This document shows, piece after piece, positions 11,882-61,538 of a stretch of DNA of 64,000 bases. Source of the stretch: Trichosphaerium sp. ATCC 40318 (taxonomy: Eukaryota > Protista > Tubulinea); the NCBI GenBank assembly GCA_038496445.1, contig JALMLS010000091.1, forward strand, positions 27,148 through 91,147. Direction: 5' to 3'. The translations under genes were made by a program, and so were the position numbers. Numbering within the stretch: position 1 is the stretch's first letter; the number at the start of each line of letters is the position of its first letter. The notes under the pieces are model-generated. The model had not been told where the DNA came from. It ran no database searches and was given only the letters and a program-made list of their open reading frames with translations.

Positions 11882-13827
11882 TCAGACGTTTGATGCAATA
11901 AGCTTATTTGCTGAAAGTCTGTTTGCAAATACATTTGCTACAACACCTTCTAATATAACGCCTAGAAGTTGAAAAATATAAGTACAAAGGATACTTGCAT
12001 CTAATAAACAAAAAAAGGTCCATCATAAAATAAAAATGTTTTGTCACGTAAACACCCAAACGCTACGCGTAAAATAGATTTTTGAAGTATTTGTCTCACA
12101 TCACAAAAAAAAAAGAAGGAAAATCTGAGTGTCGGACATACTTATTTGTTTTGAATCAATTGCACATGTAGGATGAACAAATATTCTTGCTCCACCTTTA
12201 GTATGAGTGCCAAAGGCCATATGTTTCTTTTTAAAAAACCCAAGAGCCTACAAGACACGTTAACAAGTGAATACTCCATAAAAATGAAACACAGTTGAAA
12301 TAATCGTTATTGTAATCGTAACGCTCTCAATAGTAGCGGAAAATGATCGAGTACCTCAGAGTAACTACTACCAGTGTATTCAGGGTATGTTTTACGTAAT
12401 GTATCACCAGCTTTAATACGCTTGTTTAACAGATCAATTTTGTTTAGAAACAGCACTACGATAGTTGTGCCACCAAACGTATCTCCTGTTACGAGCTATT
12501 AAAAGAATAAACGTCAGTAGTCTGTCAACTTTTTTTTGAACAAAAAAATCAAAACGTTTTTCTCGCTTACCTGTTTCCAAACATCGATAGATTCCTCTAG
12601 TTTAGTTTGCCCAGGTGTGTCAGATTGCACATCCCAGCAATCAATAGCAGAAACGTAAATGGTAGCACGAACAGCACTAAAACAAGAAAAGTTAGTGTTT
12701 TGAGACAGAGCACGTAAAAAATGTCCTAAAACGCACTCTGTAAAACAGTTTATCCATTTCCTACGTTCACTTCTTTGACCACCAACGTCTATGACGTTCC
12801 ATGTAAACCTAAATATACCAATAAGATAATGGTGAGGAGATAAAGCGCCAAAATAGCCAAGAAAAAGAGTAAAAAGAGTAAAACGTTTCGAAAGTTGCAG
12901 TTTGGCGCAAAATATTTACCTATCCATTTTAAACCCGGTCTCATCAACTCCAGTAGATACAATGCCAGTAGTACGTTGTCTAGCAAGCAGCATATCTTGT
13001 GTTGAAGGAATCCAATCCTTATTTATGTCAAGACCTAGCCAGTGCTCTAATGTGAGCACGGTACTATCTCTATCAATTTTACATATCTGGTATGCAGCTT
13101 TAAACCCTTGTTTTTGTGTTAATCCAATTTTAAGCACAAAAGTCTTCAAATAGCCTTACCAACGTCAGAAAATATCTGTTTACATGCTCTAATCCTCTCA
13201 TAAGCTCCTTCTTCGTCATCAAACATACCAAAAGCGTTTGTGCTTGTGATTAAATCTCTTAGGTGTTTATTTTTCCTCTTCGTTTTAAGTCCTCTCTCTG
13301 TTGCCTTTGTTAACACTAGTTGCGTTGCGGCTATAATATTGCTGCAAATAATATTTTTGGTTGTTTTTCTGTCATTGTCTGTGAATCCTCCTGCAAAGCG
13401 TAGGCGCATCTGTTTAACTAATATGTAGTCAGATTTAAAAGTTATTACGGAGTTGAGTTTTTTAAACTGAATCAGAATTACCGCTTGTGGTGTTTAGTTA
13501 AAAAAAGAACGATTTGGCTACTAGTTGCACTAACACACTTTTTTAGGAAGACTGTGAGCGCAAATTCGTCAAATAGCCGCAAAACTTGTCGTTAGCGTAA
13601 TAAACGCTCTTGGATGCATTATGATGAGAAAAAGTAGTTTTGGGTTGAGCGTTGTGGTTTCTAAATTGAAAACAAAAAGCAAACGTACCAACAGTAGATT
13701 TACCACCAGAGCTTGTTCCAAGCATTAGAACATTTATTGTTTGAGCTCTTAACTTCTTTGTTGCGCGAAGCTCCTCGCTAATTTCAACATGACGTGAATT
13801 CCGCTTACCAGATCCCAGAGTGCACAT
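11882..13827 (-). CDS. Heterotrimeric G-protein alpha subunit (divergent)
   Basis: G1 LMLGTSSGGKST, G2 ARQRTTGI, G3 DVGGQRSERRKWINCF, G4 LFLNKID, G5 TCAID, across about 7 exons. Confidence 0.92.
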
Positions 13828-52050: not shown

Positions 52051-54147
<2,097 letters not shown>

Positions 54148-54327: not shown

Positions 54328-57300
54328 ATGATGATGGATAAAATAGAAAGTAAATCCTCTGTCAAATTGCTACAATCTAAGAGTTCACAATGTAACTACC
54401 GTGAAAATGCTCGTAATCTTGATATACTGAAGCTAAAACGCGGGTTATCGCGTAAAATGCCTTCGGTATTGGTATGTACGCTGTTGTAGCGTAATCTAAT
54501 AAGAGTGGTAGGAATACTCAGCGTTACATTGGTGTATTGCTGATGGAGACACTGAAAACACCAAACGGCTCGTAGAAAATACCAATGACGTTAATGCTCG
54601 CGATAAATGGGGTTCGTTGCCTTTTTAGTACCATAGATAAAACTAAGAATCTTCGCGTAGGAAATACACCACTGCATCTAGCTTGCCGTGAAGGTACAAT
54701 TGATGAGTTATTTGTATTTTTAACTTAGTTTTGAATACTTACATGAATACTAAAGGTAGCCGTGCAACAATGTTCTACTTGCTTGAAAACGGCGCAGGCA
54801 TCAGTTTACAAAATTATATGGTGACGTTTGGTTTTTTATTGTTAAAACATACGCTAACGAGCAGTTTCAGGGTATTGACGCTTGTGGTATTGCAAAGTAT
54901 CGTAACTTTGGACCATTACGACAGTTTTTATTGAACAAGACTATAACAACGACTACCCCGACACAATTGGATTTTTCGGGTTTAAACCTCAAGTTCATAC
55001 CTTCAGGCAAGAAATAACAACAATCAAAAAACGTCGTTTTTTTTTTTCGAATAGAGAAATGTTCCTTTACTGACGTTTGGTTATTAGAGATATACTCTTG
55101 CACAAAGCTTAAGAAACTGGATCTAAGTTACAATAATATTGAGTGCTTGCCCTCTCAGATAACTAAGCTTGAGAACTTGCAGAGTCTAAACGTACAGCGC
55201 CTTTCAAAACCAAACCAAATTCCTGATTTTTTTTTTCTGACAATGAGGACACTAGTTCCCCTTGAGCTTCTCTGTGAAGAAGTATTTAATCTTCTCTCCG
55301 AGTCATACTATACAAAACAGCCTCTGCTTTTCTTGAGACGTGCTAAGGCGTGAATAACTAATTATATTTAGTTATCCCATAATTACTTACCCGAACTACC
55401 ACCTGAATTGGCTCAGATGACATCTTTATCAGAACTTCGCGTTGAGAGGAATAACTTGGATATTGAGCAAAGCATTATTAACAAGTACTTATGAGAGTCT
55501 TGACTTTATTCCTTACTCTGCGCCTGTAGAGGGACTGCTAGTATTATAAGACATTTAAAAACAAGGTTGACGGATAATCTTAAACCTTGGCACAAAATTA
55601 AACTGTTGTTTGTTGGCAAAGAAGGAGTTGGTATGCTATAGTTTACATGCTACATAATTTTGCTAGTACTAATACGTGTCTTGGTAGGTAAAACAACATT
55701 GTTACGATGTTTGAGAACTAGTAAATTTAGCGGTAAAGATTTATCAACAGATGGCATAGATATGGCTGGTATGTCCAGTTTATTGCGTCTTAGGGACCTT
55801 TCATGTTATTACTTAGCGTTTTATTAACACGTGAGCTTTTTTATAGAGTGGGTGAACGGCAAAGTTAATTTTAATTGTATGGACTTTGGTGGACAAGAAG
55901 TTTTCTATCCAACACATAGATTATTCCTTACTAAGAGATCTATTTACTTGATTATATTTAATCTTCATGATATGGACTCTCTAGTGAGACTTGAGTATTG
56001 GTTAAGGTGGATAAAACATACACAAAAACTTGTAGGCAAGTGAAGAAGAAAAGAATTCTTACGAAAAAGTTTTTCTTTTTGTTTAACTGTTTCTTTTACA
56101 ACAGGTCCACCTGTCATTATTGTTGGTACACATATGGATTTAGTACCTTCGGATAAGATAGCGGCTATTATAAAGTCCATCAAGAAGAGGTATAAGTCTA
56201 AGTTTCCAAACATTAAAGATATTATTGCTGTAAGCAGTAAAGATAAGAAAAATATAGCTTACCTCAAAAAACGCCTTCAAGAGTACGTATAGATATCCAA
56301 TCGCATACAGTATCCTTCTCTTAATTTTCTATGAACAGGGTTGCACTACGATCAGCTATACTAAAAATGAGAGTTCCAAAATCTTGGTAGGTGAAACACG
56401 TGTTTGTTTGACTATTTTTTTTTCCTTGCTTACAGTTTCTTAATAGGAAAATTTTTTGGAATTTCTTGAGTGAGTACAAGAAGAAGCATGGTGCTACTGT
56501 AAAATGGGGAAAATATTGCACATGGGCTAAACAAGCAAATATACCGTCAGGGTATGAGATATCGTCTATTTGATTTATTTGCTTCGACTTATTGTTGTTA
56601 ATAGATCACTCCAAAACTTGACTTCTTTTCTTCATGATATTGGTGCAGTAATGCATTTTAACGAACCTAACTTGAGGCACCTTGTTATTCTAAGTAAGGT
56701 TTAATTAGTAATTACTATATACTCATATTTGTTCGTTATAGATTGCAAGTGGCTTGCAGATGTAATGAAGTCTTTAGTGTCTATGACACAAAATTATGTT
56801 TCAAAAGGAATGTTGAGTGTTAAGCACTTACCACTTATTTGGAAACAGTTCCCTTCATCTGAACGCAAAACTCTTCTTGATATCCTAGAGAAGTTCGAGA
56901 TTATATTTCCTATTGACAAGGAATGTGCTGAGCGTCTATGCGCTAAAGACATAGCACAGCGTACGTACTAAACGAAGTCATGTTTGATGTTTACTAAAAA
57001 TGTCTCTAGATTACTTTACACCCAATGTAGGCCGACGACAAAGCTCAAAACGTCTCTCAGCGCCTGCTTTCAAAAAAAGACCTCATCAAGTTGATCAGTT
57101 CACAGCTTTTAGAGGATCACGTGACGAATCAAGTTGGCAATATAATAGTTTACAGTGTATGTATTTTTTTTTTCAAATGAATTTATTCTGTTAATGTTGA
57201 CACGATGTTATAGCTGTAAGAGAATCAGAAGTCGTTTCAGCAGCTAAATCTACTAGTACGTTTTTTTGGAAAAGCCAAATATAATGTCTTGTATTAATCA

Positions 57301-60300
57301 GGTTAAAATAGAACTAAGGAACAAAATTCAGGAGTTGACTGTATGACATGGTGTTTTTTTTATCCCTAAGTTGTCTTAACTTATTGTATTCACTTTATTT
57401 CTTAGTATATCATCCCTTGTTTACTACCTATTGATCCAGATGAATCCAAGTTAGAGGTAAGTAAAGACTAAGCATCCTTAGAAAATATGCTAATGGGCAT
57501 GAAAATTAGTTGGTATTCTCTAAAAAGCTACCTGATAGATTTTGCTCAATTGTTCGAAGGTACTGTTAAACAATTATTTGCTTTTTTGGTAATGACTGTT
57601 TAGGTATAAATTTATGTTCATGCCTATCGGATTTTCTGCTTCAGTCGTTGTAAGGGCGTACCACTTGCCACATTTCAATATTGTACGTATTAGATAAGTT
57701 AGTCTCATTTTTTTTTGGATTTCTTCTTGTGAATTGAAATGATGTGAACTGAAACTGGTTATAGCAACTTTGTTGGCAAAATGGTGTTATAATGAAGCGT
57801 GGAAATAGAAATCCAATCTTGTTAGGATTATTCTACAATCCACATCTACGCACTTTAGATGTTAATGTCAGATATATAAAATTACACAAAGGATCCGTTT
57901 CTAAGGCGAGACACCTTCTCAAATCAGTCGTACGTGTAATCTGCTGGCATTCAACACGACAAAGCAATTATGCAAACATGCTTTTACTTATGTTCTTAAT
58001 ATAGCTTGAGATGATAAACAATTTGATTGAAGGTGTTTACAGTAACAACTCCGCTGAGAAGTTTGCTCTTTGTACAAAATGTGCAGCAAAAGGTCTTGAT
58101 GATCATCCTATAGAAACTAGTGCATTAGAAATGCTTATAATGAAGAGGGAGAAGCAAGCATTATGTTCTATTCTAAATGTGGAAATTAAGTACGGAAGAT
58201 TCCAGATGGTTGAAAATCACGTTTTCTGTTCTTTTTCTCGTATACTTATCGTATTGTAGTTTGATTGATTTATGTCCGGATCTATTACTTGCAGCAAATA
58301 ATATGATTGAAACATCTACACTTATAATTGGAGAGGAAATTGGAGAAGGTAAAGTTGTTGTTTAGAAGTCTTTGGAGTATAAGTTAATCGTTTATTTTAA
58401 GGCGCTTTCAGTAAAGTATTCAAGGGAACCTATGAGGGTAAAGATGTTGCTATAAAGAGACTTCGTACAGGATCAGGTATGTCATTAAAAGGGTATACTA
58501 TCAATACTTCAACAATTCTTCTAGTTTTGTTTTCTCACATTTTTTGTTCAGGTAATCAAGAGGAGCTTGTTCAAAAATGGCAGGAGATTCAACAAGAAGC
58601 TTTTATAATGGCTGAATTTAATCATCCAAATATTGTTCAGTTTTTTGGTGTTACACTTCAGCCGCCTCAGCTTGTACTCGAGTTGTTAAATGTGCGTAAC
58701 AACGTTTCCTTTTTTTTTTTTGAAAACAGAAAAACCCTCAAACACTCGCTAACTTGTACAAAGGCTGGTGATTTGTTTGAATTACTACACGACAAGAGTT
58801 TCGCGAACAAGGATTTCGCTTGGATTACGAGATTACAACTTGGTATAGATATTGGTAAAGGCCTTGAACACATGCATAAACTTGTACCTCCTATAATGCA
58901 TCGCGATTTAAGAAGTCCTAATGTACGTTCTTACAAAAAGCTTATTCCAAAGTTTGGTTTTTTGGTTCTGTTTACAATACTAATGATTATACGTAGATAT
59001 TTGTACGTAACTCTTGTGATAGAAAAGTAGCTTCATAGCACATAGCTTGTGGCACTAGTGATCCATTTATCCTGTTTTTTCTTATAACCTGTCTAATCTT
59101 TATTTAGCTCCATCGTGAAGGCGATAAGTTAATAGCGAAGGTGGCAGACTTTGGTCTCAGCCAACGTGTGTCTTATAGAGCCAGTGGTATCTTAACAACA
59201 TGGCAATGGATGGCACCAGAAACCTTCGATTCTGCACAGAGTAAAAACTATACTGAACTAGCAGATGTGTACAGTTATGGCATCATCCTTTGGGTGCGTG
59301 ATTACGCTTCTCATTTTTTCTACGCTTTCATATATTTTGTAATGTTTTTGCACTAACGGTTACTTAGGAGCTTTGTTCACGTGAGTATCCATTTGATGAA
59401 TACCAGATTTATAAAAATGACTCAAGAGGGAATCAAAGCAAGCACATAAATCTCGGAAATTATAAAATATCTAATAATTTTTTACTCTAGTCGCTGTTGG
59501 AGATAAATACGCTATGCAAGAACGTATATCCAAAGAGGTATGTACTTTTTTTTTTCTTTTTTTTTGAATTGGCTTACTAAGTTTATGTGTAGGATTTGAG
59601 ACCTACTATTCCGCCCAATACACCTAAACAAGTGGAAAAAGTCATAAATGGGCTTTGGAAGAGGAAACCAAGCGATAGGTATCTCTTTGCTTCAACAACT
59701 TTTTAAGTTTTTCTTGTTTTTTTCTAGTTTTGATTAGTATGATTTTCCTTATTTGTATTTATGTAGGTGGCCTTTGGGTATTGCTATAAAGACTTTAGAT
59801 AATGAATTGAATAAAGTAAAGCAAAGTATGACAGTACCAGATGATAAGATAACGCGTAAATCATCTATCTCTACAGTACGGTTTCTTTGTTTATTTTTTT
59901 GCTACTTTTAGATTTGAAAGTCTTTTAATGTGCTCTCTAGGACAAGCGAAGTCTGAAAGCTTTTGCCATTGAGCGTAAAGAACTAATAATTGAATTGGAA
60001 CGCCAAAAGTGGAGCTGTAATCGTGCTATGGCTTGTAGATTGTACGTCTTATTTTTTTTTTTTCTTCATTCTGATAAATTTTAGCGTTCTTGATTATATT
60101 TCGTCTCACAAAGATCCACTTCGTGATCCTTATAGTACAATACCTAATGTAAAATCGAGAAAGTTCAGGAGTAATCCTTATCACCGTAAGAATTAAGGAG
60201 ACTTTGCTCTTTATTGACCCTTTTGTTTTTTATTCCAGATGTATTTGTTCGAAGACAATCAGTTACTGAAGAAGCTAATATCTTGCTCGAAACTACTCAA

Positions 60301-61332
60301 CAACATCGTACAACATCACTAGCAAAGAGAGAAATCCTTATTGTGCTACTTGGTTCGTTTCATACTCGATAAGGTGGTTACTAACTGTGAGTTTCTTAGC
60401 TGCTTGGCAACTTGACTTAGCTCAGTTGGATATCTTTTCATTGCCATACAAAATGAGGTTTGTTTTTTGTGATTGAATTTTGTTGACTTTGTGTTGTTGG
60501 CGTTATTCTTACATGGTTTTGTTCTTAGATTCTTCAACTATACTGGACAACGTAGTATTGGTGCTAAGGCATTGTTGACAAGATTCGATGACTTTACGGA
60601 GTTAGGTTGTCTGTACTATATTGACCTTGCTGAGTATCCTTTTTTTTTGTTATTTTTTATTTTATTTTTGGATTGCGGTTTCAAGGTTGCTCTTGATCCG
60701 GCATGTCTTTTCTTTCTTGATTTTCTTCTTAACTAGCATTGACAAATAAAAGACCCTTTTCACTTATCAAGCTGCTTTGAACAGTATCAGTCAATTATGC
60801 GAAACTTCCGACAAGGTAATTTTTCTTGATAACAAAGATTTTTTTTTGACTTTCTGATGTTTAGGTGTTCTTATTATTCTGTTTGTTAACTTTGATGCTT
60901 TCTCTAAATCTTACAAAACCGGTGATTTGGATAAATTTATTCTAACACTACGTACGTATCCGTGACTGCTTACAAGTCATAAAAGTTTGCTATGTTTTTT
61001 TTTTCATAACTAATATTCTTTTTCAGCAACGAATTACCTCGATGGTGCTGGTGAGCATAATCTAAATCCACTAAATGCCAATGATGCTATAAATACTATA
61101 CGCACAGTTTTTAGTAACTCATTTAGAAAAAACGGCACGTGTCACGTGAAAAATTGTTTAAAAGTTTTTTCAAACTGCAAAAAAGTGCAAGCTTTTTTTG
61201 GATTGAGTTTACTAAGTTGGTTGTTTAGGTCGGTGGAGAACGACTATATTCCATGTCCAAGACCATGTAGATATTAATGATGGAATGCGTTTCTATACAA
61301 AGACGTACAGAGAAGAGTTTGCTTTTGCTTAA
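54328..61332 (+). CDS. Roco kinase: ankyrin-LRR-ROC-COR-TKL kinase plus C-terminal G-alpha-like domain
   Basis: Ankyrin GNTPLHLAC; LRRs; ROC KLLFVGKEGVGKTTL, STDGID, DFGGQEVFYPTHRLFL, IIVGTHMD; COR WLADVMKSLV; kinase IGEGAFSKV, VAIK, HRDLRSPN, VADFGLS, WQWMAPE. Confidence 0.92.
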
Positions 61333-61538
61333 AGTGACCTTGTAGAGGTTGATAAAGTGCTAGTAAGTAGTACAAAATAAAAATTGTGTAAATTACTTTA
61401 TCTCTGTTATCGCCTTCACTTTATTTCATTTTGGGCTACTTAACTTTACATGTTCACATGTTTAGTTTACTATGGTAGCGAGGATCAAATACTTGATGCA
61501 CAAGAGTCGTTATTTAGGATTGTTGTTCTTTGAGTACA

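Follow-up and report, generated by a model that had tools for sequence, protein, structure and literature searches.

A Roco kinase gene of Trichosphaerium sp. ATCC 40318 with a C-terminal tail that faintly recalls the Ras-like half of G-alpha

What stands at the C terminus of a Roco kinase that has no WD40 propeller, and could it be a remodelled G-alpha protein? The question is raised by a gene in a 64,000-nucleotide stretch of contig JALMLS010000091.1 of Trichosphaerium sp. ATCC 40318 (the window; 36.8% GC, eukaryotic and with abundant short introns). One long multi-exon gene runs along the plus strand from ~54.3 kb to 61.3 kb, and from its last kinase exon the frame is open to a TAA stop at 61330-61332, giving a tail of 283 residues encoded by nine small exons (59941-61332). 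The reading we prefer, at a probability of about 0.5, is that this tail is a nucleotide-free α/β module derived from the Ras-like domain of G-alpha, which would offer the kinase a fixed surface for docking or regulation. Its chief rival, to which we give appreciable weight while holding it the less probable of the two, is that the tail, though part of the Roco protein, is a lineage-specific domain of no G-alpha ancestry, and that its GQRS and ILF-N-FD-F turned up by chance where hydrophobic strands and amphipathic helices follow one another in a generic manner.

The RNA evidence was the spliced contigs of one small public run (X1, 13 Mb), which cover part of the stretch; as these contigs are spliced, X1 is RNA. 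The exons between 59941 and 61332 are real and expressed. Nine introns lie within or next to the tail, and spliced contigs bear out the removal of eight. Joints were read at 60041>60085, 60185>60239, 60352>60400, 60457>60529, 60815>60865, 60951>61027 and 61134>61229, and a 15-base overhang of contig 5, TATTGACCTTGCTGA, which occurs only at 60619-60633, adjoins 60742 and gives the joint 60633>60742. Counted both manually and with a script, the total length of the ten exons between 59767 and 61332 is 1 + 960 bases, or 36 + 283 codons plus the stop. The original prediction, made from the letters of the window, that the tail exons keep the frame is borne out by the spliced contigs and by the open frame of 283 codons. 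Its exons were rightly small and in frame, but it counted about seven where there are nine, the exons 59941-60041 and 60085-60185 preceding the stretch it had quoted, and two of its splice sites were misplaced. The acceptor after ...IDLA had been set at ~60770, whereas RNA puts it at 60741/60742, which adds E-QIKDPFHLSS (about 10 residues) to give ...DLA-E-QIKDPFHLSS-CFEQ..., and the last donor had been taken as a GT at 61113, whereas RNA shows a GC donor at 61135, which adds SNSFRKNG to give ...TVFSNSFRKN-G-RWRTT...

The first two tail exons (t1 and t2; all nine are on the plus strand) are t1 (59941-60041; 3' joint 60041>60085 in RNA), which is helix-like with charged heptad-like residues and gave no family match, and t2 (60085-60185; both joints in RNA), a proline- and basic-rich linker containing DYISSHKDPLR. 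The remaining exons, all seen in RNA, can be read as candidate elements of a Ras-like domain. A helix followed by the strand REILIVLL in t3 (60239-60352) is the candidate αN/β1, t4 (60400-60457) the candidate β2 with its turn, and t5 (60529-60633), with FFNYTGQRS...CLYYIDLA, the candidate β3, degenerate G3/switch II, α2 and β4. The candidate α3 is t6 (60742-60815), and t7 (60865-60951), containing VLIILFVNFDAF, is the candidate β5 with a degenerate NKxD; t8 (61027-61134) would be the αG/α4 region, and t9 (61229-61332), which ends in the stop, is a candidate for β6/α5 by position only.

The intron between t5 and t6 (60634-60741, plus strand; contig 5 overhang) has the termini GT..TG. We class it as U12-type, for which we looked for a donor /GTATCCTT, a TCCTTAAC-like branch site at a distance of 8-15 bases from the 3' end and excision from the RNA: its donor at 60634 is GTATCCTTTT, its branch site TTCTTAAC lies about 8-10 bases before the 3' end, and it is excised in RNA even though its 3' end, TG, is neither AG nor AC. 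The intron between t8 and t9 (61135-61228, plus strand) is GC..AG; its RNA joint appears as 61133>61228 and, with 2 bases of slack, resolves to 61134>61229. It is one of two GC..AG introns in the Roco gene, the other being 59438-59490 (plus strand), and there are RNA joints for both.

All searches and scores of the tail were made exon by exon, with each exon peptide treated separately. For comparison with G-alpha, a profile was made by aligning 19 full-length intron-free open reading frames (ORFs) from metagenome contigs, fetched with the degenerate pattern DVGGQRSERKKW. An internal comparator was available on the minus strand of the window at 11882-13827, which had been called a true G-alpha gene and is one: seven exon fragments match the profile at 10.8-36.8 bits, in order along hidden Markov model (HMM) positions 12-334. 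The gene has at least eight exons, an unusual P-loop, LGTSSGGKST in place of LGAGESGKST, and QRTTGI in the catalytic-loop region.

When aligned singly with hhalign, t3 was best placed at G-alpha 12-39 (P=0.22), t4 at 188-199 (P=0.087), t5 at 199-228 (P=0.02) and t7 at 263-288 (P=0.01). The four placements are colinear and abutting and correspond to αN/β1, β2-β3, GQRS/G3/switch II/β4 and β5/G4 NKxD, as the original prediction had placed them, and that four exons reach such segments independently counts against a lineage-specific domain. The best placements of t1, t2, t6, t8 and t9 lay elsewhere, that of t2 at 165-199 (P=0.15) being out of order and not significant. When each exon was compared by Smith-Waterman with the 3268 six-frame fragments of the window, the top match of t7 (60867-60950) was the NKxD exon of the real G-alpha gene; for the other tail exons the homologous G-alpha exon was never the top match.

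These separate alignments were summed in colinear order on the G-alpha profile to give a chain score, which is quoted for exons 3-9. In the chain alignment, the MAC of t1 had paired with the MGC of the G-alpha N terminus, three residues on highly conserved columns, and since this match was judged spurious the statistic was restricted to the later exons. The chain score was 84.7 bits versus 68.1 ± 4.0 for within-exon shuffles, 3 of 10,000 of which reached it, and both reversed sequences and reversed exon order remained at the null level. With each exon held to a fixed window, the p values for t3 to t9 were 0.10, 0.05, 0.022, 0.49, 0.010, 0.025 and 0.84 (9e-4 by Fisher's combination); the 0.025 of t8 was obtained at G-alpha 296-315, its free best match lying elsewhere.

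The signal was confined to one half of G-alpha. Expressed as z, the tail scored 4.1 against the whole profile and 4.3 against its Ras-like part, while z was -0.2 with the helical part, -0.1 with a profile built from 40 giant-virus Rabs and 0.1 with one built from 8 Arfs. This tells against a lineage-specific domain, as generic α/β or helical character is common to all of these. For scale, the Roc pieces of the same Roco gene gave z values of 13 against Rab and 2.5 against G-alpha, whole Arfs gave 9-24 against G-alpha, and whole Rabs 0-6. By these scores the likeness of the tail to the Ras-like half of G-alpha is weak, a faint and specific one, about as faint as that of Rab to G-alpha.

The motifs run through the tail in the order ILIVLL, MRFFNYTGQRS, CLYYIDLA, VLIILFVNFDAF and TIFHVQ. 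Like the Ras-like domain of G-alpha (PF00503), the tail has, in order and similarly spaced, a hydrophobic β1-like strand, a tight β2-β3 hairpin that ends in F-N-Y-T-G-Q-R-S with G-Q-R-S at the end of β3, a β4-like strand, and at β5 I-I-L-F-V-N-F-D-A-F, in keeping with I-I-L-F-x-N-(K)-x-D-x-F. From GQ to N-FD there are 62 residues, compared with about 66 in G-alpha, and the ~90 residues that follow N-FD are nearer to the 85 of G-alpha than to the 55 of Arf, distances that again speak against a chance resemblance.

The losses are extensive. In place of the P-loop G-x-G-E-S-G-K-S-T after β1, the tail passes from ...REILIVLL to A-AWQLDLAQ..., and GK[ST] occurs nowhere in it. Helix α1 is absent, and only ~26 residues separate the β1-like strand from GQRS, which leaves out the all-helical insertion domain. 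Nothing between β1 and the hairpin resembles switch I, R-x-x-T-x-G-I, with its catalytic Arg and Mg-binding Thr; a DYxxSxxDxLR look-alike is found in exon 60085-60185, out of order (P=0.15). Where G-alpha has D-V-G-G-Q-R-S-E-R-K-K-W at G3/switch II, the tail has F-N-Y-T-G-Q-R-S-I-G-A-K, keeping G, Q, R and S, exchanging Asp for Asn and losing most of RKKW. At G4, I-I-L-F-L-N-K-x-D-L-F in G-alpha, the tail keeps the Asn and the Asp and lacks the Lys, and neither the G5 motif T-C-A-T-D-T nor the α5 helix was found in t9. With no P-loop, Asn for the G3 Asp and the NKxD Lys missing, nucleotide binding by the tail is therefore very unlikely, as had been supposed from the start. Judged by the features that define the family, the tail is not a G-alpha but at most a G-alpha-derived pseudo-GTPase.

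Several points weigh against descent from G-alpha, and a good part of them is what a lineage-specific domain would lead one to expect. A G domain without helix α1 is structurally unusual. Two of the seven candidate exons gave no signal where it should be, t6 (60742-60815) at the α3 position (p=0.49) and t9 (61229-61332) against G-alpha 314-354, the expected β6/TCAT/α5 (p=0.84). When every six-frame fragment of the window was scored with the G-alpha profile, seven exons of the true G-alpha gene ranked highest, and no tail exon on its own rose above the noise. The tail and the G-alpha gene, 46 kb away, have no intron position in common, though this comparison is uninformative. Single-exon database searches were blank throughout. 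Pfam hmmscan with eight tail exons at E<=10 gave no match; phmmer against the PDB matched exon 60530-60631 (t5) only to de novo TIM barrels, an irrelevant match due to a repeated 18-mer, and gave no match for exon 60867-60950 (t7). Exon 60530-60631 likewise had no phmmer match among 1.84e9 (1.84 billion) protein representatives. With the stop-free ORF 61014-61274, which contains t8, a word search found no translated transcript fragment and a scan of metagenome contigs gave 487 pattern matches, 0 of them confirmed, so that none of these three resources (the representatives, the word search and the metagenome contigs) yielded a relative of the tail. An ESM Atlas search on one tail exon gave no usable match.

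The statistics call for the same caution. When 400 P-loop-free giant-virus ORFs were cut into pieces like the tail, three of them (0.75%) reached z >= 4, so the realistic p is ~0.005-0.01 rather than 3e-4. (An earlier control of 49 metagenome-locus ORFs was dropped because it was contaminated by GTPase-like ORFs, with a maximum of 140 bits.) Moreover, the chain test uses the same letters that first drew attention to the locus and hence is not independent of them, and in a scan as large as the one from which this locus was chosen by eye, look-alikes at this level are to be expected by chance. The proposed G-alpha-like order of motifs is present, but only modestly above chance (p ~3e-4 against shuffles, ~0.005-0.01 against real proteins). 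What stands of the proposed derivation is the colinear score, with z about 4, and its specificity for the Ras-like half; the single exons, t6 and t9 do not bear it out. Descent of the tail from G-alpha is, on these comparisons, weakly supported.

Is the tail in the Roco protein? By its domain content the upstream part of the gene is that of a Roco, as first proposed, namely an ANK-LRR-ROC-COR-kinase protein of the LRRK type. The gene probably starts near 54328. An ankyrin-repeat exon in its N-terminal part (54585-54725) matches Pfam Ank at E=4e-4, just below the cutoff, and inspection by eye shows LRR-like repeats at 54960-55450. The ROC GTPase domain spans several exons (55600-56290) with G1, G3 and G4 intact; Pfam Roc PF08477 matches at 55831-56040 (E=6e-9, 36.6 bits versus a cutoff of 27), and the motifs read are an intact P-loop GKEGVGKT, split by an intron between GKEGVG and KTT, then DFGGQ and GTHMD. 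The COR-A exon (56729-56968) matches PF16095 (E=3e-10, 40.6 bits versus 35.3). The kinase domain (58330-59678), TKL-like, matches Pfam Pkinase and PK_Tyr_Ser-Thr, with Pkinase on exon 59141-59290 at E=2e-8 and 34.3 bits versus 31.7. VAIK, HRD, DFG and APE are all legible, so by its motifs the kinase is probably catalytically competent. All of these features are on the plus strand, and the kinase introns are confirmed by X1, 59678>59767 among them.

That last joint (contig 3 and its overhang) leads into a stop-free exon at 59767-59875 (plus strand), which encodes 36 residues and ends in phase 0. Between it and the tail lies a 65-base GT..AG intron (59876-59940, plus strand) with a pyrimidine tract and agreeing phases on its two sides. 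The splice 59875>59941 is one that we infer because frame, phase and canonical splice sites fit; none of the contigs listed for X1 extends across 59798-59991 (depth 0), so it is unbridged, which counts against the proposed architecture. RNA proof that the tail exons are in the Roco mRNA, the check proposed for the original prediction, was therefore obtained for the exons themselves and not for their link to the kinase. We nonetheless consider it highly probable that kinase and tail form a single polypeptide. Otherwise the intron would be retained, in which case translation would halt after 11 more codons at the TAG at 59909-59911, or the tail would be made from a separate transcript starting within 59941-60025 with its Met at 60026. 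The gap in the contigs suits both variants, and for a separate transcript there are the in-frame ATG at 60026 and contig 4, which begins only 21 bases upstream. The stop-free exon and the exact phase of a 65-base GT..AG intron count against them, gaps in coverage are frequent in a run of 13 Mb, 28 codons are open upstream of the ATG in AT-rich DNA, and there is no space for a promoter. We rate a tail outside the Roco polypeptide as decidedly improbable, although retention of the intron may give a tail-less isoform.

That a G-alpha gene was captured and the tail is its decaying remnant, still spliced and translated yet functionless, would suit the loss of all nucleotide-binding motifs and of the helical domain and a similarity eroded to near noise, but is the least credible account, as 283 codons have stayed open over nine exons in a 37% GC genome, the exons are expressed, and the splice signals of all nine introns, the U12-type and GC-AG ones included, still work.

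On the reading that we prefer, of a nucleotide-free module derived from G-alpha, one gene would encode an ANK-LRR-ROC-COR-kinase protein with the tail in the place of WD40. The first ~68 tail residues would consist of a helical segment and then a Pro/basic-rich linker, and the last ~215 most likely a nucleotide-free α/β fold with the strand and helix order, spacing and signature residues of the Ras-like half of G-alpha (ILIVLL; a hairpin leading to FNYTGQRS; CLYYIDLA; VLIILFVN-FD-F). Unable to cycle GTP, the tail might serve as a fixed docking or regulatory module beside the kinase, acting either in cis, in the manner of the WD40 domain and C-terminal helix of LRRK2, or through a bound partner that belongs to the heterotrimeric G-protein pathway. 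The fold, the descent from G-alpha and any binding partner are, like the kinase-tail junction, what we infer.

Interest in Roco kinases comes from LRRK2 and Parkinson's disease, and how their C-terminal domains affect the kinase is an open structural question. Like LRRK1, LRRK2 and the Dictyostelium Roco4-type Roco kinases, the present protein has Roc, COR-A and a kinase with intact motifs. LRRK1, LRRK2 and Roco4 end in a WD40 propeller, whereas the 283-residue helical-plus-α/β tail of this Roco lacks a WD40 and matches nothing in Pfam. Pseudo-GTPase domains within larger proteins include the plant extra-large G proteins (XLG) and the pseudoGTPase domains of p190RhoGAP, and PfMyoF is said, in the title of a paper (PMC13448217), to have a Rab-like tail domain. 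What the Roco tail is proposed to have in common with these embedded domains is a GTPase-fold module without nucleotide chemistry that works as an interaction domain in a multidomain protein. XLGs, in contrast, retain the whole G-alpha architecture with its helical domain and are easily recognised from sequence, whereas in the Roco tail only ~215 residues are concerned and recognition is marginal. The topology of LRRK1 and LRRK2 is ANK-LRR-ROC-COR-kinase with a C-terminal WD40 (PMC6337361). A Roco with a G-alpha-like tail was not found in the literature searched, where absence is no proof; in the review PMC6337361 the word 'heterotrimeric' has 0 occurrences. Should the derivation be true, a Roco with a dead G-alpha-like module in place of its WD40 would for the first time join the Roco and heterotrimeric G-protein families physically in a single polypeptide; it would also add a G-alpha-derived pseudo-GTPase to a short list, with G-beta as a testable partner. 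If the likeness is due to chance, the locus simply has another lineage-specific Roco tail.

A more elaborate form of the proposed derivation, which we consider unlikely, is that the tail imitates in one chain the G-beta-binding surfaces of the heterotrimer, in which a G-gamma/GGL-like helix with a DPL motif (59941-60185) and the nucleotide-free G-alpha Ras-like domain would together recruit a free G-beta propeller in trans. The Roco would then gain in trans what LRRK-type kinases have in cis, a WD40 partner, and receptor-driven release of G-beta-gamma would be wired straight to the Roco kinase.

Exons t1 and t2 themselves (59941-60185) encode a charged helix and then ...SSHKDPLRDPYST...NPY, which loosely recalls the DPL...NPF region of G-gamma/GGL; the resemblance is not significant. 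They also loosely recall the linker-2 motif of G-alpha, DYxPTxxDxLR, by the out-of-order t2 placement already given, which is not significant either.

Within the kinase domain there is a microexon of 6 bases, ATATTT, at 58997-59002 (plus strand), flanked by ag and gtacgt. It encodes the Ile-Phe of the catalytic loop HRDLRSPN-IF-L, and an RNA contig spanning 58922>59108 has exactly these six letters between its two sides. Another X1 contig (depth 26) at 58608-59294 appears to skip 629 bases (GT..CA), matches by only ~27-30 bases to either side of the skip and has 255 unlike bases beyond the match at both ends; it is most likely a paralogous kinase transcript and no splice form of the Roco gene.

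Just upstream of the Roco gene and head-to-head with it lies an ORF at 53935-54147 (minus strand) that resembles, by eye only, the N-terminal winged-helix part of a RIO2-type kinase. At the other end, an AATAAA is found at 61376, 3' of the TAA that ends the tail, and a convergent gene begins shortly beyond.

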